From Bigelowiella natans CCMP2755 (lineage: Eukaryota; Protista; Cercozoa), in NCBI GenBank assembly GCA_000320545.1, contig ADNK01000501.1, positions 1 to 64,000 on the forward strand: a stretch of 64,000 nucleotides of DNA, written 5' to 3'. The position numbers were made by a program, and so were the translations under genes. The stretch's first letter is position 1; each line of letters begins with the position of its first letter. This document shows positions 18,941 to 52,284 of the stretch, in pieces. The notes under the pieces are model-generated. The model saw only the letters and a program-made list of their open reading frames with translations, did not search any database and was not told the DNA's origin.

Positions 18941-19702
18941 ATGCTTGGTAATTCATCGACGATGTCGACAGCAGTAATCTGCTTCGTAGCTGGGGCAATG
19001 TTTCTCTTTGTTTCATTCTCCTCTTCCAACAATTTGGCTCTCTCGAGCGTGGTGCGCAGCTCCAGAGTGCAGCAGCCGCATTTTGTGGCCTGCAATGGCC
19101 GCGGCCGTGCTGCAAGACACCTCGACTTCAGGGTCAGGGCGAGCCAAGAAGAATTTTCGCAAATGAACCGACGTAATATGATGATTGGTGTTGCATCTTC
19201 CGCCATTGGCACTGCTGTTGCTCCTGCATCGATGGCGAAGGGTGTCAAGGGATTCCAGCAGCACAAGGATACTGGAGATCGCTACGAATTCTTATATCCA
19301 TTCGGTTGGGAGGAAATTTATGTCAAGGGTACCGACATCCTCTACAAAGACATCATTGAGCCACTCGAAACGGCGAGTGTAACTGTCATTGAGACGGAAA
19401 AGAAATCTATCACAGAGTATGGGGATATTCAGGACGTCACAGGCTCTTTGGCCGAGAAGGTGCTGACCCCCCCTGGACAAGCTGTAAAGATGCTTAGCGC
19501 AAAGGAGAGGCAAGATGGAGGCAAGACTTACTATCAGTTTGAATTCACCGCCAAAAATAATCGCTACACACGCCACAGTCTGGTCTCTGCCGCTATCAAC
19601 AACGGCAAGTATTACATTTTCGTGACGAGCGCTAACGAAAGGAGGTGGAACATCATGGGAGATCGTCTTAAAAAGGTGGCGGATAGCTTCAAGCTGGTCT
19701 AA
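18941..19702 (+). CDS. PPL1: PsbP-like protein 1, thylakoid lumen; intronless
   Basis: PsbP domain motifs YEFLYPFGWEE, YKDIIEPLE, GKTYYQFEF, YTRHSL and ANERRW. The leader has a hydrophobic signal segment, an S/R-rich transit peptide, and twin-Arg NRR followed by a hydrophobic A-x-A-like region. Confidence 0.93.
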   Translation: MLGNSSTMSTAVICFVAGAMFLFVSFSSSNNLALSSVVRSSRVQQPHFVACNGRGRAARHLDFRVRASQEEFSQMNRRNMMIGVASSAIGTAVAPASMAKGVKGFQQHKDTGDRYEFLYPFGWEEIYVKGTDILYKDIIEPLETASVTVIETEKKSITEYGDIQDVTGSLAEKVLTPPGQAVKMLSAKERQDGGKTYYQFEFTAKNNRYTRHSLVSAAINNGKYYIFVTSANERRWNIMGDRLKKVADSFKLV

Positions 19703-28030: not shown

Positions 28031-30544
28031 GGCAGCAGAGGCAGCATCAACACGTACAAGAGACCTTCTTGAATGGGATCAAACTCACTATAAACTCTAT
28101 TATAATCATCACCTAGGCCTCCATCGCAGAGATGCCATACCCCATAGCGTGTTGGATATTTCCTGGGGATGTCGAATCACGGAGGGGGGGATAGAGCCAT
28201 GCTGCTGTCGCCGCCTCTCAGTATGATTGATATCATTCGGACCCGAGTTTCTGTTTCCTCCTACTGCTGCTAGCAACACTAGCTCTCTCACTTTTTCTTC
28301 TATGGCTGCTATTGTTTCTCGCCATTTTGAAGAGGCATTTTGCTGCTCCCCATGAAGTCCAACGTCACTACTGTCGTTATAGTGGCCAACACCATCGTCT
28401 CCCCTTCTTCTTGTCATCGTCGTTATCCTCGCCAAAGCCCATAGGGCGTTTGACAGGGATTGCAGCCGCAAGGGCCTCCTACCCACTTCTGACGGCAAAC
28501 CGCAGCAGCATGAACATGAAGTGGAGGAGTGGGAGAAACGGACAACAAAGAAACGAACGCGATGGATCAAAATGTACACACGAATGGACATGTTAAAAGG
28601 GGACGCGTTAGTAGCGTGTTTACATGTACCGTGGTATATCACGTAACTAGAAGGTAAGAATAGTAATATTAATAATAATAATAATTATAATAATAATAGT
28701 AAGAATATCAACACTGCAACCTGCTTTAGGCTCTTCTTGCATGCTGCTGCTGCCTCCTGGCGCCGTTCTTGTTGCGACTGTCTTCATCATCGTCGTTGTC
28801 GTGGTACTTACGAGCTGCTGTGCAAGATAAAGCAACACGCTTTGGGGCGCCTGACAGTAGTATATGTTTAAAGAAGAAGAAGATGATGAAGAAGAGGGAG
28901 AAGAAGGAAAACCGAGACGTGAGCTTGACGATAAAACAAGGGGAGTCTCATAATTAGAGCATAATTATACACTTAAAAAGGTTAAGATCAAAGTGAGATA
29001 ATGAGTTGTCATTATTTTTTGTCATCATCATGGTAATTATAATAGCCGTCGTCACCCTACCCTAATGTCGAGAGAGGCGAGGGAATGCAAAATGTTGGCG
29101 ACGTGCTGCGGCTCAATATCCTTCAAATCTGCAAGATTTAAGAACAATCACAAATGATGCTTCAGAAAGTCACAAGAAAAAATGATCAGATTGCGAAGAA
29201 AACGCCGTTGATCGCAACAAAGTAAGTTGAAAGCATGGCTGCAGTACTATCATTATAGTCATGATGTTGGTGTTGTCTTGTACATTCATCGATTTCTAGA
29301 TTTGGGAAAGGACAACTACCAAGGATACGCCTGTACGCTGCCTCTAAATAGAGTCGACCCGGTACTCTGTGGAGAGAGGGGCAGGTGAAAGGGAAGAGGG
29401 GGGGGGGGGGGTAGGGAGAAGAATGCAACATTTGCTGAATCTCTCATATAAGACAGACCGGGATATCATCATGCATGTTGATTCATATGCGCAGGTTTGG
29501 TTGACGACATTGCATTGGTTAAAATATTATCAGCTACACACAATATCATCATCACACACAGATCTTCCTCTCCTGCCTCGCTTTACCTTGATAGCTTAGC
29601 AAACGCCCACAGAGAGTTGGAGATACTCTGTGACTCAAACTCACCCATCTGAGAGAATGATGAGAAAGAGAGGATAGATTAGAGGGGGGGGCGGGGGATG
29701 GATGGGGGAGATAACGCAGGTTAGCATGAAGCTGGAACAATCACACGTTGCTTATCTGCTATACTTTTGATGATATAAATTGCAACACTACTACTACGAG
29801 TATTGACCATGTCGGCGGAGAGGGTTTCCAGGTCATCAAGCAAGGACGATGACGACGATGATAAAGAAGAAGGTAAGGATATTCCTCCCCCGTCTTGAGC
29901 TCTCAGCTTAGCCATGGCCCAGAGAATATTGGAAAGATGCTGGGGTTTTATTTGTGGGGTCTTGATCTCACCGTCACAGCCGCTGTCACCATCAGGATTT
30001 ACCTGACTATTGCTCCTATCCGTATTTGACAGTCTGAGCCCTTCCTTTCCCACGACGATTTCTTCACCTTCTCTTCCTTTCCCCCCACCTCCTCCTTCTC
30101 CTCTAATTACACGCGAGATGCGTGCATTTAGCCTGTATAGGAACTCGCTTCGATAAGAGCACCTACGGGTTAGGAGACGACGGTGGTGTCATTGGCCACA
30201 ATATGAAATGGTATGGAGGGGGGCAGGACAAGAAGCACCGATGTATGTATGTGTGTATGTGTGTGTGCGTGTACAATGCCGTAATGTATTTGATTGTCAT
30301 TAGTACATCTACCCGATACGCGCTAGGGAGTAATACGTATTTGCTAGACCCTGCGGAGGGGGACAACGAGAACGTGGTTGGCACAGAAAAGAGAGAAAAA
30401 AAAAATAGATGAGGAGGGCGGGGAGATAATGAAAAGGGGGGAGAAGAAAAGAAGAAATATAACTTAATCTATAACTATAAATGGCTTTGAATCGGTAACA
30501 AATCAGTGCCGCAACGGGCGATAAAGACCAGTTACAAAGACCAG

Positions 30545-30586
<42 letters not shown>

Positions 30587-32330
30587 ATACAAACACACAT
30601 TGCCAAAGTTACAAAGAAAGAGGTGAATTTTCACGACCACCTGTATCTCTATCGAAGGTATATTATCTTCAATATGTTTGCAGATCCACGCTATTGTCTC
30701 CCTCCCATCTCCTCTCCGCCTTACAAGCTGGGGCTGAAAGCAAGGGGGGACAGCATGATCATTCGCTACAGCTCTTGTCATAGATACACCACCGATAATG
30801 ACGATAAAGAAAGAATTTTTTACTAGCTGCTACTCCTACCTCGATCTTGCCTATTCTGTGCAAGACAGTGACCCAGTTTACAGCTAATCAAGTAGGGATG
30901 GAGAGAGGATAATAACAACACCATTTATGTTTAAGACAGCAAAACTCACAAACGCACGAGCACGCATGCATGCAAGCACACAATAAATACTGCAAAGTGC
31001 CTCATCATCATGAATGTAACGTAGGACACTGCTACTGTATCTCACTGTTCATTAACAAACCGGTAAGCTTGTCTTCATTATCTTTGGCGAATGCGAGAAG
31101 ACGTTCCACATCTCTGAATACACGTCGTTATAGACCATGGAAAAAAACCAACGCAACGTTAAGAGAGTTAAAGATGACAGTACGTGATGACTGACTGATG
31201 CATGGTCCCTTTCTCTTCACTCCAAAAAGACATTATTTCCTTTTCACTCAAAAGGTAGCTACTACCATCACCACGGAGTCCTTGCTCGCTAATAATACCT
31301 TGCGTTGGCGATGAACTGGTTGATGCATCTGGGGTTTGGAAAGAATATCTTCCGCCGCCTCCTTTGTCAGTATATTCATCATGTGTGAGTGTGTGCATGC
31401 GTGTATAATGTCTTTGTGATTGAGTTTGTGTGTGTGTGTGTGTATCTCTCGGTTTTTGACAGAATCCAGGAATGGGGGGCAACGCTGTCGACGGCAGCAC
31501 TATCCATGATGGAGCCCCCCTCATAACGTTATTTAAAAGATACTACTTCCGTCTCTCCTCTTTTATTTCACAAATTTGCTAGTCCTCATACAACAACAAA
31601 CAAGCAAACAACTCCTTCAACAACTGGCAATCACTCCTCCCACCTGTACGAGCTCTGGGGGGAGGAAGAGGAGGGCGAAGTTTTCCGTGGTGTGCCACTG
31701 TATTCTACTTCCTCACGTCCTTGTCCCCTTCTCTTTCCTACTGGTGTCGTTTTTTGCTGTGGTGACAACGATCGTTGCTGCATCTGCTGGTCCTGCTGCC
31801 GTGAACTTGTGAGGGAGACTTCAGAAGCAGCAGCAGCAGCATCACCAGGCGGCATCATGGCAGAAGAAGTTTCCTCTACTTGACAACTGACGCGTAATTT
31901 CGCTCGCATATTACCAGTTGGAGAACAAGGATGCTTACTCTAAAATATGACACAGTATAAATGAACGAAGAACACAGCAACTCTTTCCGCCTAACAATCG
32001 GTGATATAACGTGTGTCATACAACACGGCACCTGTTGTTGTTGCCTCCTCGTTAATGCTACGACTTCGTACATAGGAGTTGCTACGGTGGGATGTAAACA
32101 TCCTAATGCAACATCACAGCGCCGCCCCCACCAACGCCGCTGCTGCATAGAGAGGAGTACGTGATGACGAGTGTCGTGCTGATACCGACACCGTTGCTTC
32201 GTAGATGATGCCCGGACGTCTATTTATAATTTTATTTAAACAAATATTATTTGTATGAAAAAGGGAGGATCAACGACGCTATCGTACCTGAAAGAAGCGC
32301 TAGGACTACAGCGGGTAGCATCCTCCTGGA
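21930..32330 (-). CDS. Very long multi-exon helical-repeat protein with OPR/FAST-RAP-like repeats, probably organellar RNA-binding; boundaries approximate
   Basis: Repeated motif in separate exons: KPQHLSNILWAMAKL, EPQHVANILHSLASL, HPQEISNTLWGMASLRWRP, LQSLSNALWALARI, LSNIVWALSRWG, PTIINTMWSFAR. I could not confidently read a C-terminal RAP domain. Confidence 0.62.
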
Positions 32331-32816
32331 CAACAACGAAAAATCACAGCTTGAGTGTGGTGTGTGTGTGTGTGTGTGTGTTTGGGAGAGGGAAGATGGA
32401 TTTGTAATGGCGTGCACGGTGGAATTTTGTTGCGCAAATAATGTGGGTTCTCAAACCAGTGCATGGATTGGCGGGATGATTGCTTATGCATCATTTACGC
32501 CAATTGGAGCGCTTCACGTCCGAACCACCGCTCAAATGTGTGTTTCAAGGCCCATCTTGATCAAAACTGGGAAGAATTTGAGTTTTCTATCCCAACTGAG
32601 ATAATAAATCACAATAGTTGTGACATACTAATTACTGTAACACAGTCGAACGAATAGGAGAAATAAAATTTATTAAATTTCTTGACCGTTCAGCACGCAC
32701 GCAGGCAGGCAGGCAGGCAGGCAGAGTGTTCAAATAACATAATCTAGGGGATGATACTATAAATTCGAATCGAAAACATTCACAATATAACTGCAACAAC
32801 AAATTACACGACAGAA

Positions 32817-34400: not shown

Positions 34401-34488
34401 TTCGAACAGCGAGATGTGCTTTGTTGATTGATCAATTTAGTTGCATTCATCATCATCTTCATCTTCTTGATCATCATCGTCTTCAAAA

Positions 34489-35232
34489 TCATCTTCTAAA
34501 CCCAATCATTTGCATTTCTCCAGACCCACCACGTAGTCGCAGAACGAGATGCAATGTGTTCTCCTTCTCAACTCCGTAGTCACTAAGAGCCCGACCATCT
34601 TGCAGCTCCTTACCAGCAAACACAAGTCGCTGCTGATCAGGAGGTATGCCCTCTTTGTCTTGTATCTTCTGCTTCACCGTGTTGATGGTGTCGCCTGCTT
34701 TCACATCTAGAGTGATGGTCCGTCCAACCAGCGTCTTTACGAATATTTGCATTTCTCCAGACCCACCACGTAGTCGCAGAACGAGATGCAATGTGTTCTC
34801 CTTCTCAACTCCGTAGTCACTAAGAGCCCGACCATCTTGCAGCTCCTTACCAGCAAACACAAGTCGCTGCTGATCAGGAGGTATGCCCTCTTTGTCTTGT
34901 ATCTTCTGCTTCACCGTGTTGATGGTGTCGCCTGCTTTCACATCTAGAGTGATGGTCCGTCCAACCAGCGTCTTTACGAATATTTGCATTTCTCCAGACC
35001 CACCACGTAGTCGCAGAACGAGATGCAATGTGTTCTCCTTCTCAACTCCGTAGTCACTAAGAGCCCGACCATCTTGCAGCTCCTTACCAGCAAACACAAG
35101 TCGCTGCTGATCAGGAGGTATGCCCTCTTTGTCTTGTATCTTCTGCTTCACCGTGTTGATGGTGTCGCCTGCTTTCACATCTAGAGTGATGGTCCGTCCA
35201 ACCAGCGTCTTTACGAAAATCTGCATCGACAT
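34489..35232 (-). CDS. Intronless divergent polyubiquitin: MS + 3 x (76-aa ubiquitin variant + SGE) + MQMIGFRR
   Basis: Three 237-bp units (Met codons at 35226, 34989 and 34752; a partial fourth at 34515), each ending LRLRGG. First ATG at 35232; the ORF-track start at 35367 is TTG. Confidence 0.92.
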
Positions 35233-35768
35233 TGTTTCCAGCTTTCTTTTCCTTCTTTCTTTGTTTTCTTTGTTTCCTTTGTTTGTTCTATTGAGTTGTG
35301 GAGCCTGTTTCCTTTTATTGTCCTGTTTGCTCGCCGCCGCTGTAGTCTTGAGTTCGGCCAAAGCCAATCAGATCTCTCCCTCTCCTGTCGGCTGGCTTTC
35401 CAGATAGAAAGATCCACGATTCTTCGTAACGGGTAAACACAAACGATTTGTCGTTGTGCGACAATGATTATTCCTTGTCGCTAATACGACTATTTTGATC
35501 CCATTTTCCCTTTCATACGTACGACACAGAATCACCTCTGCATCAGAAACGGATTGCCCTTGCCTCCAGCGTCACATTCTCCCTGCCAATCACCATCGCG
35601 CATTTGTCCCAAGGTGAATTGATGTCTGCGACAAGAATTGGAGGAAAACATTGTCGTAGGCTGAAAATTGCACATCGCCGACTACCATTCGAATGGATTA
35701 TTTCAAATCTTCAACTGACAGACGGCACGGGCAGAACTGAGGGGAGCTGCGTCCCATTTCCGATACAA

Positions 35769-37883: not shown

Positions 37884-38797
37884 CTAATCTTCATAATAGG
37901 TATACTTTGCCTTGTTGTGCATAACAAGTTTACCTTCGACGAAATAGAAGCTATCGGATTCACTTGGGTATTTATTGGATACAATTTCATCAACTGTAAA
38001 AAAATAATAATTAGCATATTGCTCCAACCAATTCTGAAAGCTCTTACTTAAATCCTTCTTCATAGCCGGTAGATCATACATTGCTTCCCAGTTGTTTGTA
38101 CTGTTGGGCATGCAGAAATCTACTTTGAATTCCCAGCTCTTGATAAGCTCGCCCTTAAAGTAATGACGCTCGACCATTACAAAGTTTGGGACGGGTTTTT
38201 CACCAACCTTGAATTTCAATCTAATTAAGATAAAACATATTTAATTAGGATGACCCCAATGATTGGTACAGAATGATTGGGACACTTACGAAGTTGCAAT
38301 TGTTTTGCACTCGACAAACGAGCGAGGGAATTTGTATTCGATCATTCGAAGTTTGTCCATATCAAATCCCTTGGGCAGTTCTGGAGGATTCTCCGGTTTT
38401 TGAACATTGAAAATGACTTTGTCACTTGTATGATCTCGGATTGTAAATGCTTGGAAGTCTATACCGTAGGTATTTGCGCTCATTGGGCACATAAATCCTA
38501 AGAACAAAATGTTCGCACAGAGATGCAAAACAAAAATGTAAATTGATTTTATTCACAGGAAAAATGAGGTTTCGTAATTTAACCCAGAAAACGTTTAATG
38601 GGCAAAATAAGATTACTACGCGTCATTTTCGTAAACAGTTCAAATTATGTGTTGGAAGGTGATATGATCATTGCGACGACTGCGATAGACTAGGAGTAAT
38701 TTTGCATAATTCTCAGACCTTTGGAGGCAGACTTCATCTTCAGGGCTTCATCTATTGAGAACTTTTCCCATTCACCATAGTCCTTGGTTTCCGCCAT
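37884..38797 (-). CDS. UNC119: UNC119 / PDE-delta family lipid-modified cargo carrier (4 exons)
   Basis: MAETKDYGEWEKF...GFMCPMSANTYGIDFQAFTIRD...FKVGEKPVPNFVMVERHYFKGELIKSWEFKVDFCMPNSTNNWEAMYDLP...SDSFYFVEGKLVMHNKAKYTY. Confidence 0.92.
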
Positions 38798-47937: not shown

Positions 47938-50900
47938 TTAATACAGTATTTTGACACCTTTCTGCTTCAATTCGAGAAGCGATAACGACTTCGGCTGGTT
48001 GCGCAGGTTCATACCCCCTATGTGAATACTTTTAAGCTTCTTCAAACGCCATAGCGAGGCTGGGAGGGACTTAAACTTGTTAAACGCTGCCCAGAGCTCC
48101 TCTAGATGGCTCATATCCCCAACGTCTTCAGGAAGGCCTGCAATTTTATTGTTCCTGATCGCTAGGACCTTCATCTTCTTCAGTCTCGTGAGCGACTCAG
48201 GGAGACTTGTGATTTGATTGTGCGAGAGATAAAGATTCTCCAGCCCCGTAAGCTTTTCTATTTGCGATGGGACGGATACAAGGTGGTTATTCGATAGGTT
48301 AATATATGAGAGGGGTCTAATGCTAAATATTGGCAGAGGAATCGTCTCAAACATGTTGAACGATAGATCGAGCCGTGTGAGCCACTTTAAATGTGAGAAG
48401 GAGAGTGGTAAGTCCTGCAGCCCAGCATGTAGTAGCGTCATTGAGCGTTGGTGCGCGCCTAGACATCTGACCACATTATTGAGGAAGCTTTGCAGTGATG
48501 GAAGATTTGCTTGGGCACTGTGATAGTGTTGCTGTTTCTCCTGTCGTTGTTGTAGTTGTTGACTCCCCATCCTTTGCATCGTCGTCATCCCCTCTTGTAC
48601 CGTCTCCTTATTCTTCTTATCCCCAGAATGATCGTCCTTAGCGTAGACGTTGTCGTTGCCATCTTCGCGTCCATCATCACCACCACCACTAGTATCATCG
48701 TCAGCAGCAATAGCAGCTTCTTCGCTATTGTTGTTGTGTTTGCCAGCAGCCTCCTCATCAAGCCGCAACAGCGTGTTGGAGGCACGAAGAATGTTAAGGA
48801 GCGCCAGCATAGAGTTGTGACTGTCCGTATATTGCCAAGGGGGATGGGACTTGAGGCCTACAAAGGTGCTGATAACCTGTCTAACAAGCCGCCCAGAATC
48901 ATCATTCGTTGCTCCGGATCTAAGAAGCCGCGTCATCGACAGATGGGCCTCTTGTAGCCATCCTTTTCCATGCAAATCGGTGTACATTGCCTCCCACGTG
49001 CTGCTACTACCGTGGTTCTTCCTCTCACTATCATCGCCATTGCTTTCTTCCTTTCTTGGTCTGATATCGTCGGGGACTACAGTCTCGCCCTTTCCTTCGT
49101 TGGGTTTATTGTTGCCTTGACAACGTTCCTGTGCTGCCTTTCGATTGGATCCATTGACATCCTGATGCTCACAATCACCCCCCTTGCTACTCCTACCAAC
49201 TTCTCCGCCGTCTTGATTTACTTTGTCGAGCAAGTGCGTGGTCTTTTGAAGCGCGTCTTCCACACGCGCCCATTCGACAATGTTCATTTGCTTCAGACGC
49301 ACATGAAGCGAGAGATTCTCCAGATCGGCTGGGACGAGCCTGCAGTCTTTCCTATCGGTCCAGTGCCATCGTAGAGCTTTCTTCCACGCGGAACTGCCAA
49401 GCGACACGCCAAGCGCGGAGAGTGAATTACGAAGGATGAACACCAGGTGCCTCCTTGCAATATATTGCAGCTCACAATTGTTATTCTTGTTGCTATTACT
49501 ACTACTACTACTACTACTATTACCACTATTACTATTACTACTACTACCTCTACTACTACCACCACTACTATATCTACTGCTACTACTACTACTACTACTA
49601 CTAATCGTTCTGCTGCTGCTGTTCCTACTGCTACTACTCACCACCAGTCGCTTGCTGCTGCTGCTGTTTTTGCTATTGCTGCTGCTACTATCGAACCAGG
49701 TGTTCGTTTCTTGCACAAACAAGCGAGGGATAGAGAACTTACATCTGGGAGGAGTGCAGAATCGGGCCAGATATGCCTGCCAACATCTGAGGAACAGATG
49801 GTTGCGAATGTACACCGCGCGCCGAGCCTTCATTCGTTCCTTTCGCATCTTGAATATCTCTCTCCAGTCAGTACCCTTCGCTTTAGCATCACGCTGAGAC
49901 TGAATCATCAGCTGCCGTGTAGCATTACCGAAAGTGTGAGATGCCATGCCCCGATTCTCCGTAAACAAATTTTTGATTTGTGGGAGTTTTCCAGAGGGGT
50001 CGTCGGTGGAGAGCATATCGTATATGCTCTTTTTGATCTTGGTGGGAATGAAGAAGTTCTTGGACTGGAAGAACCGGCCTTTAAATTCTACTCTCATCAA
50101 TTGCTTTTCAAGCTCCTTTCCAAGGTTTCGTTGCACTGCCACTTTCTTTGCCGTTGCAAACCAGCTTTCGAGCAGTCTCCACGACATTTTCTTTGTCAGT
50201 CTACTCAGCCCTCCTTCTGCCTCTCCCCTCCCCTGGTGGATTGTGGCCTCCCACTGGTCACTCAATGTCAAACGCACGAGCTTTTTCATTATGGGTATCG
50301 AGCGCGAGACTTTGGCGCAATGATGATGACGATGATTATAGAGATGATGACGACGATGACCCTCATGGTCAAGGAGTTGCGCTAAGCTGCCGCCGGCTGT
50401 CTCCAGCGCTCCTCTCACTTCCGCCTCCGACTCGAGAAGGACTAGCCACTCCTTCATGGTAAGATGAAATCGATACATTCCAAAGCTTAAGTAGCATTGA
50501 TCTGGGAGAGTTTTCTGCCAGAGGAGTTGAGTTGCCGATGAGGAGGAAGAGGAGCAGGAGGGAGAAGACGACCCCGCATCCTTTCCAACAGAGCCATCAA
50601 CAGCAGGGGTGGCCGCCTCCTCCTCCTCCACCTCCTCCTCCCCCATTATCATGTTAAGCATTGACGTCATTCCTTCTCGGATACCTTTGGTCGTTGCATG
50701 CGCTCTGAGAACGCGTTTTCTAATCACAATCTTTATGGCTCTCTGCAGAGCTTCCGCCCACAACCTGCTTAGCAGCAGCAGCTTATGCATGGGTTTGTTC
50801 CGCTCTTGGCCCTTTCCCTTCTCCTCTCCCTTCTTCCCCCTCCTCCTCAGCCTTGGGCTGCTTATATTCCTTGAGATTTGACCCCTGCCGCCCCCGCTTG

Positions 50901-52284
50901 CCACACCCCCCCCCCCCGTTTCTGGCTTCTTCTCTTCGTATAATTTGGGGTGGTCCCATAGTAGCTTCAGATGACGAATGGGGATTCCATGCTTGTGCAT
51001 AAGGGCTGCGACATCAAGCGTATCAGGCCATTTCAGGGATTTATGATCGAAAACCGATTGGGGTACATTGTAGAGGATTGCATCATCCTCGTCGCCACTA
51101 GCGCTGTCTTTGTTTTTCATCAACGAGGACGATGATGATGATGATGATCTTGAGGATTTTAGCGGCGGAGGGGAACGTGGAGATGATGGCCTAGAGCGAG
51201 AGGATGGGGAGCGGGGGGATGATGGTCCGGAGCGAGAGCAGGAGGGAGACGAAGGGGATGACGACGGGGAAGAGGACTGAGATTCTGTTTCGCTTATGGT
51301 GGCGGTGCTGCCACTCACAGATTTGTTCCGAATCGAGAGGAGGAGGGTATTAGCTGCAGCATCGATGACATTTCCGCATAGAATCCTTGTCGCATCCCGC
51401 AGGTTATCTTGATGTTGACGTTGCTGATGCATTCCCCACCTCGAGAATGTGTCAGAGCTGAGCGCAGGTACTTTAGTCGACTGCTTGCAGTGGCGAGTGA
51501 GGAATTCTGGCCTCAGCATGCGGTAGAACACGGAAGATTCAGAAGGAGGAAGGTGCTGAGTATCAAGTGGCGATTCAGGTGGGGCCCAGCGGCCCAAATC
51601 GAGCAAATCTAAAGGAGGGAGGAGGTGGGGGTGGAGGAGGAAGGGGAGATAACAAATTGTTGGCAGCTGTGTGTATAATGATTTTACGCTAGAAGTGCAA
51701 CATCCAACAAGCAACACTTCGCACACCAACGTGCTTAAATGGCAGAGATTTCTAAAGAGCACAAGGCATAACTTCACTTACAGTAGCTTTTGCAATAGCC
51801 TTTCTTCTCCTCTTGCCTCTCGCCGCCGCTCTCCCTCCCTTTTCCATCTTCTCCTTCTCTATTTTGAGGTCCTTTTCCACAGTGAAGATCAACAGCTACA
51901 GCGCCTCCGCCTCCTCCTGCTTTTTGAACATGGACGACGTGGCCTTCGACATCTCCACCGGTGTTGAGCATCGTTCCCATGACGCTGTGCCTTGCAAGGT
52001 GAAGGTGTTGCCCGGCACGCTGCATGTAGCGATCGAATGCTGGATCTGAGTTGTATACGTGCCTTCCTGCGTCATTAGAGCCGTAGATTAATTGTGACTG
52101 ACTCAGTGGGAGCACCGGCATTGCAACGAGTCGAAACCCTCGATAATCAACGATTGTCTGCAGCGGCACTTGGATAGGAATCCGCTCTGCCAGGAAGAAC
52201 TGATTCGTGGAAAACGAGAGAGTAGTAATGAGGAGAAACAAGGATTTAATGACGACGGATATCCACGCACACACAAACACACAC

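Follow-up and report, generated by a model that had tools for sequence, protein, structure and literature searches.

The window analysed here, a 64,000-nucleotide stretch of the genome of the chlorarachniophyte Bigelowiella natans, contains on its minus strand a complete polyubiquitin-type coding sequence (34489–35232) in which three copies of a divergent ubiquitin unit are joined by Ser-Gly-Glu (SGE) linkers. The explanation towards which we lean, with some reserve, is that this is a stand-alone precursor of a ubiquitin variant that would be processed and conjugated by the ordinary machinery, and that the gene is a young array forming a subfamily with the B. natans gene model JGI 32975. Ubiquitin is among the most conserved of eukaryotic proteins, and natural variants that keep the determinants of activation and cleavage and have changed receptor and chain surfaces are both rare and informative. 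If expressed, the variant would represent a natural experiment in how far a tag can drift on common machinery, and it would extend the rhizarian junction-insertion character, a phylogenetic marker, from one or two residues to three. If silent, it would give an uncluttered view of birth-and-death turnover in a ubiquitin family of unusual size. Either way, polyubiquitin junctions that are scored as phylogenetic characters may derive from paralogues.

Organization and age of the variant gene

The gene is a single intronless open reading frame of 247 amino acids and a stop codon, evident in both the ORF listing and the translation and matched three times by Pfam PF00240, with its ATG at 35232 and its stop codon at 34491–34489 on the minus strand. 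In product order it encodes MS, a unit, SGE, a second unit, SGE, a third unit and an 11-residue C-terminal extension. Tandem Repeats Finder reports 3.0 copies of a 237 bp period with 99% matches (34508–35226). The tandem polyprotein with SGE linkers that was originally proposed from the letters of the sequence is confirmed. The start codon and the Ser codon that follows it (35227–35232) have an A at –3 in the context AACAATGTC, and lead into unit 1 (76 aa; 34999–35226), linker 1 (TCTGGAGAA; 34990–34998), unit 2 (76 aa; 34762–34989), linker 2 (34753–34761), unit 3 (76 aa; 34525–34752) and the extension after the last Gly-Gly (34492–34524), all on the minus strand. Each of the three units is followed by SGE; behind the third, SGE-MQ comes after the final Gly-Gly before the repeat ends, and it is MS rather than SGE that precedes the first unit. 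The MS-MQIF start is also found in the canonical polyubiquitins of B. natans and Amorphochlora.

Two further segments flank the coding region on the same strand. The purine-rich leader immediately upstream (35233–35367) is in frame and stop-free, and a longer 292-codon frame in the ORF listing begins at a TTG within it; however, it contains no ATG and is for that reason read as a 5′ UTR, most likely non-coding to judge from its sequence. At the other end the stop codon is adjoined by a GAT/GAA-rich triplet repeat (34437–34491, in a segment noted at 34437–34515), which is acidic in the +1 frame and in which the gene's own frame is closed by repeated TGA. It is probably a 3′ UTR microsatellite, although it could also be a remnant of an older tail. 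We considered a downstream fusion partner and rejected it, since the ORFs behind the stop codon contain no Pfam domain; B. natans does fuse ubiquitin to actin, membrane proteins and others. An Rfam search of the whole window gave no match. The GC3 of the gene is 0.51, like that of its neighbours, and by this comparison there is none of the codon bias of a highly expressed gene.

The three units are closely similar at the DNA level. Units 2 and 3 are identical over 237 bases, and unit 1 differs from both by just two synonymous bases, in codons 2 and 3 (CAG/CAA and ATT/ATA). By comparison, the six units of the canonical Amorphochlora gene encode identical proteins (dN 0) and differ at 5–31 synonymous positions, with dS of 0.1–1.1, and the variant array must therefore be either very young or very recently homogenised. 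The pattern of an old array, in which identical proteins are accompanied by synonymous divergence between units, is not seen in the variant. Beyond the last linker the repeat match continues for only eight bases (ATGCAAAT), such that the first 17 nucleotides of the C-terminal extension, those for SGE plus ATGCAAAT, belong to the repeat, and it then departs, which fits duplication of a block. The array probably arose very recently through tandem duplication of a 237-nucleotide block consisting of one unit and the nine bases for SGE, with the break at ATGCARAT, a sequence common to the beginnings of a unit and of the C-terminal extension, as would be produced by an exchange between look-alikes. 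Because the units are identical copies, their intact reading frame counts effectively as one observation and not as three.

In its general organization the gene resembles the polyubiquitins of other Rhizaria (Archibald et al. 2003; Bass et al. 2005; PMC3014934, PMC12930898, PMC6133090). These also have head-to-tail units with extra residues between Gly-Gly and Met, the insertion starts with Ser, Ser-Gly is the common cercozoan double insertion, MS precedes the first unit, and a short C-terminal extension (11 residues in the variant) follows the last Gly-Gly. The junctions depart from this pattern, in that the rhizarian insertions comprise one or two residues, as the original prediction stated and the literature agrees (PMC3014934, PMC12930898, PMC6133090), whereas the variant has three. 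The claim that SGE lies beyond the reported range also holds among 230 polyubiquitins that we fetched, in which there is no SGE junction and the junctions are none, S, SG, A, T, N, G, D, V, L, AP, NP, SD and one VDP. This VDP is the only other three-residue junction; it is in a JGI metagenome polyubiquitin of 309 aa, between a degenerate first unit and the canonical units that follow, and the protein has GG-MQM at its end, comparable to the MQM that comes behind the last linker of the variant gene. JGI metagenome contigs scanned with a degenerate DNA pattern for R-G-G-S-G-[D/E]-M-Q-I-F contained no true SG[D/E] junction, all seven matches being non-coding chance matches with a stop within the pattern, and a full-text literature search for the variant motif strings returned no paper.

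Two origins of the linker can be proposed from the sequences, and it could be either of them. First, SGE may be the old cercozoan Ser-Gly insertion with a Glu added. In chlorarachniophytes the canonical genes carry one inserted residue and the cercozoan double insertion is held to have been lost (PMC6133090), so the Ser-Gly of the variant may have been either kept from the old state or regained. Second, SGE may be a copy of the first residues of a monomer tail. The single-unit sister 32975 (see below) runs from Gly-Gly through Ser-Gly-Asp into its tail, and the linker may therefore correspond to the start of the extension of an ancestral monomer.

Unit identity and relationship to other ubiquitins

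A residue alignment from the PDB search places 17 differences between the variant unit and human ubiquitin (T9V, K11R, E16D, E18K, P19A, S20G, E24N, N25T, A28Q, I44V, Q49E, E51Q, T55A, N60G, I61V, Q62E and S65N), which is exactly the list given in the original prediction, and the predicted retention of K6, K27, K29, K33, K48, K63 and LRLRGG can be seen in the same alignment. Also retained are L8, R42, R54, H68, V70 and R72, and the Val at position 44 is a conservative change. The seven acceptor lysines are thus not all there, with K11 replaced by Arg and the other six kept, and position 18 carries an additional Lys. The product matches Pfam PF00240 in three stretches with 279 bits, and phmmer against solved ubiquitin chains gives E values of about 1e-36, with 59/76 identity (78%) to human ubiquitin. 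Modelled with AlphaFold2, a single unit and the linkers around it give a confident structure (pLDDT 88.8) with the ubiquitin beta-grasp, and the top 50 Foldseek matches in the PDB are all ubiquitin (TM 0.85–0.93; rmsd 0.4–3.7, mostly 2 or less). By family profile, predicted beta-grasp fold and C-terminal determinants, the unit is predicted to be ubiquitin proper. NEDD8/Rub1 was considered as a candidate and rejected because of Arg72 and the 78% identity to ubiquitin; NEDD8/Rub1 has Ala72 and about 58% identity to ubiquitin, and it is Arg72 that directs ubiquitin to its own E1.

The extent of the divergence was gauged against a sample of 259 distinct ubiquitin units. The variant unit differs from their consensus at 18 positions, compared with 2–6 for most units, and several of its states are rare in the sample: N65 is in four units, V44 in three, A55 in two, E49 and G60 in one each, and Q51 and E62 in none. 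Asn24 is present in five of the 259 units and in this sample is confined to chlorarachniophytes, the named polyubiquitins with TINTVK being the two chlorarachniophyte ones, and T25 and Q28 are more widespread, cercozoan-type states. We note that a Logan-derived ubiquitin-like protein of 103 aa has A55, G60 and V61 in common with the variant unit; its MQIFVK is immediately preceded by a signal peptide of bacterial type (MTPRRLVLLAALALPLILAAPASAQSE), and it recalls the secreted ubiquitin of Bacteroides fragilis.

The canonical chlorarachniophyte unit, which is identical in B. natans (AAM51224) and Amorphochlora, differs from the variant unit at 14 of 76 positions. The variant is therefore a paralogue and not the standard ubiquitin of the lineage, and its description as a divergent paralogue stands. 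A head-to-tail array that starts with the usual MS-MQIF and has junction insertions of the rhizarian type is what the organism's standard ubiquitin gene would look like, but we regard that identity as highly improbable, given a canonical unit that is the same in two chlorarachniophyte genera and different here at 14 positions, an S27a fusion in B. natans that is identical in sequence to some polyubiquitins of the species (PMC6332867), and repeats that have not diverged synonymously as those of an old array under selection do. Whereas the canonical gene has synonymously diverged repeats, those of the variant are DNA-identical or nearly so and encode units 14 substitutions away. Judged by its sequence, the variant is a divergent, lineage-specific member of the expanded B. 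natans ubiquitin family, in which Sibbald et al. (2019; PMC6332867) counted 33 ubiquitin-encoding genes, seven of them polyubiquitins, evolving by concerted and birth-and-death processes and including many partial or odd genes of 1.5–3 units, some truncated. One of their models, the 220-aa three-unit JGI 46610, could be a candidate for the variant locus.

Similarity searches with the whole product and with the junction-spanning region order their matches by summed bits, by which longer canonical arrays outrank a three-unit protein; the matches listed include canonical polyubiquitins of 4–6 units (at least 120), and the maximum identity to the variant among the matches listed is 79%. A 60-residue junction query gave 21 candidates, none of which is a fragment of the variant, although JGI 32975 was revealed among them, a 100-residue "monomer" in Table 1 of PMC6332867. 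The variant and 32975 have nine derived residues in common (V9, R11, A19, V44, E49, Q51, S57, E62 and N65), as well as the GG-SG[DE] continuation (GG-SGD in 32975, GG-SGE in the variant), and a maximum-likelihood tree built from 54 distinct units groups them as sisters on a long stem (support 95/94). By these sequence characters the two form a small divergent subfamily, within a family that has been counted but is undescribed at that level. Whether the variant is simply an already described paralogue can thus be answered in part: the family including 32975 has been catalogued, but that account is confined to lengths and copy numbers, and says nothing of the variant sequence or of the junction (PMC6332867).

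The two members of this subfamily have fared differently. In 32975 there is a single unit with a four-residue loop insertion and loss of K29 and K63, whereas the variant locus has three intact units and six lysines. From its sequence the sister looks decayed, which indicates that members of the divergent subfamily do drift. Since the split there have been four unique changes in the variant and 12 in 32975 (relative-rate p = 0.046).

Many viral elements are integrated in B. natans, and ubiquitin genes are known from giant viruses. A viral origin was considered on these grounds and rejected, because the variant residues and junction are found in none of 394 viral ubiquitin loci, and capture from or by a virus is accordingly not indicated.

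Selection, predicted processing and possible roles

The 14 changes from the canonical unit were compared with a neutral simulation in which the canonical coding sequence was subjected to point mutation until 14 residues had changed. The observed changes are far more conservative than the simulated ones, with a mean BLOSUM62 score of +1.14 as against –0.59 ± 0.47 (P = 0.0002), and with one negative-scoring change where the simulated mean is 7.2 (P = 0.00045); a stop codon was gained in 48% of the simulated neutral histories. Just one of the changes touches the core (I61V) and just one the functional patch (I44V). This conservatism argues for past purifying selection over most of the history of the lineage. 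As read from the sequence, that selection was long-term, and the statement covers the past of the lineage. A comparison with the canonical Amorphochlora gene gives dN of 0.14 with dS saturated, and hence says little on constraint.

On the main rival explanation, which is a serious one even though we doubt it, the gene is a silent or near-neutral duplicate, recently amplified as a by-product of birth-and-death in a 33-gene family, that has no role and is intact because it is young. Very recent amplification is apparent in the DNA identity of the units, the B. natans family has many partial or odd genes (1.5–3 units, some truncated), and the sister copy 32975 shows signs of decay. The locus also lies in a gene-poor, microsatellite-rich stretch and lacks codon bias, and no product was matched by the junction query or by 15 exact look-ups of plausible products and sub-products, the look-ups being a weak test in which the canonical 76-residue unit was also unmatched. 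However, the 14 changes are far more conservative than a long neutral history would lead one to expect (P = 0.0002), and about half of the neutral simulations gain a stop. In addition, all of the catalytic-pathway determinants are kept, MS-MQIF and the context of the start codon are both intact, and the variant has evolved more slowly than 32975.

In the reading that we prefer, a ubiquitin-variant precursor handled by the ordinary machinery, ordinary ubiquitin C-terminal hydrolases would cut after each Gly-Gly and release one S-extended and two SGE-extended monomers. Such hydrolases cut ubiquitin-X for every X except proline. Since L8, R42, H68, V70, R72 and LRLRGG are all kept, the monomers would be expected to be activated by the normal ubiquitin E1 and conjugated via normal E2 and E3 enzymes, in the manner of N-terminally tagged ubiquitin, which is charged and conjugated normally in the laboratory. 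Both E1 charging and deubiquitinase cleavage are predicted here from the conserved residues only. Within the ubiquitin pool the variant would then be unable to accept K11 chains, and would present a slightly altered I44 patch (Val44) and 49–65 surface.

The original prediction went further, and took the SGE-M N-termini to block M1-linear linkage or to need a second trimming protease, the unit as a lineage-specific modifier with an altered receptor and chain code, and the whole as a candidate undescribed modification system. The analysis does not support this further step. The SGE cap is not exceptional in kind, as every rhizarian polyubiquitin leaves S- or SG-extended monomers unless these are trimmed. 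The arguments from M1-linear chains and S65 phosphorylation rest on LUBAC and PINK1, which are known essentially from animals, and they would carry little weight here. That the gene encodes a distinct ubiquitin-like modifier, with a chain code and readers of its own and perhaps a dedicated processing protease, is in our estimation decidedly unlikely. Substitutions at positions that are almost invariant in the 259 units, the loss of K11 and gain of K18, the same SGE at all internal junctions and a subfamily with at least two members could all be expected of such a modifier. But the changes are conservative ones (I44V, K11R), and the residues that serve ordinary E1 and deubiquitinases (R72, R42, L8, H68, V70 and LRLRGG) are all still those of ubiquitin, so that nothing would bar the ordinary E1. 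Nor was a ubiquitin-pathway enzyme gene found near the variant locus, whether for an E1, an E2 or a dedicated protease, or an SG[DE]-junction orthologue in the JGI metagenome contigs or viral contigs scanned, and the array is too young to serve as evidence for a long-kept polyprotein design.

A further possibility is that the gene provides chlorarachniophytes with an expressed second ubiquitin-type tag, permanently SGE-capped, without K11 chains and with a changed I44 patch and 49–65 surface, that is read differently from ubiquitin itself. We consider this unlikely; were it true, the variant would be the natural equivalent of human UbKEKS in a more extreme form. UbKEKS and the other human UBBP4 variants are products of a divergent polyubiquitin-type paralogue with surface substitutions and an intact C-terminus, as in the variant described here, and they exist alongside canonical ubiquitin. 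They are expressed and conjugated by the normal machinery, and serve as a model of how variants of this type can use that machinery and yet mark different targets (PMC7066184). They have four differences, however, and their expression and conjugation have been demonstrated, whereas the B. natans variant has 14–17 differences plus the junction linkers and is known here from sequence alone. A second parallel is in Plasmodium, where one gene of the family escapes near-invariance (UbL40 of P. vivax and P. ovale has 12–13 differences from human ubiquitin) and a one-codon junction insertion has spread through the polyubiquitin array by concerted evolution (PMC10457151). There the divergent unit is in ribosomal-protein fusion genes, each type single-copy, and the insertion is of one codon, unlike the stand-alone variant gene with its three-residue insertions. 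Taken together, UBBP4 and Plasmodium indicate that escapes from ubiquitin invariance occur and can be functional (PMC7066184, PMC10457151).

Other features of the window

The nearest recognisable gene to the variant is an exon of the UNC119/PDE6-delta family, 2.7 kb upstream of it (37887–38219, minus strand; PF05351, E 3e-31). Downstream of the ubiquitin gene is a gene-poor stretch containing long CA/TG dinucleotide microsatellites (30300–30600 and 32300–32450), which the ORF list reads as CVCVCV or THTHTH. A 1279-codon exon ending in leucine-rich repeats lies further away on the minus strand (47941–51777), and among 1.84 billion representative proteins a single relative was found at E ≤ 0.001, the product of one MMETSP transcript, which begins inside the exon and is 100% identical to it along 170 residues; with this lone product as its relative, the gene seems to be absent from public protein catalogues. 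About 15 kb from the variant gene, on the plus strand, is a PsbP gene in a single ORF (18941–19699; PF01789), whose leader of about 100 residues is as expected for a plastid-targeted protein of a complex-plastid alga.

[quoted passage not shown] Together with the plastid-type PsbP gene, the MMETSP transcript match, and the Asn24 and MS-MQIF start of the variant, this composition points to B. natans or a very close relative. The canonical six-unit gene of A. amoebiformis (GCA_054601695.1; 4001–5398 of the excerpt) has a GC3 of 0.63–0.78 between flanks of 18–24% G+C, and is thus an island of strong codon bias in that 27% G+C genome.
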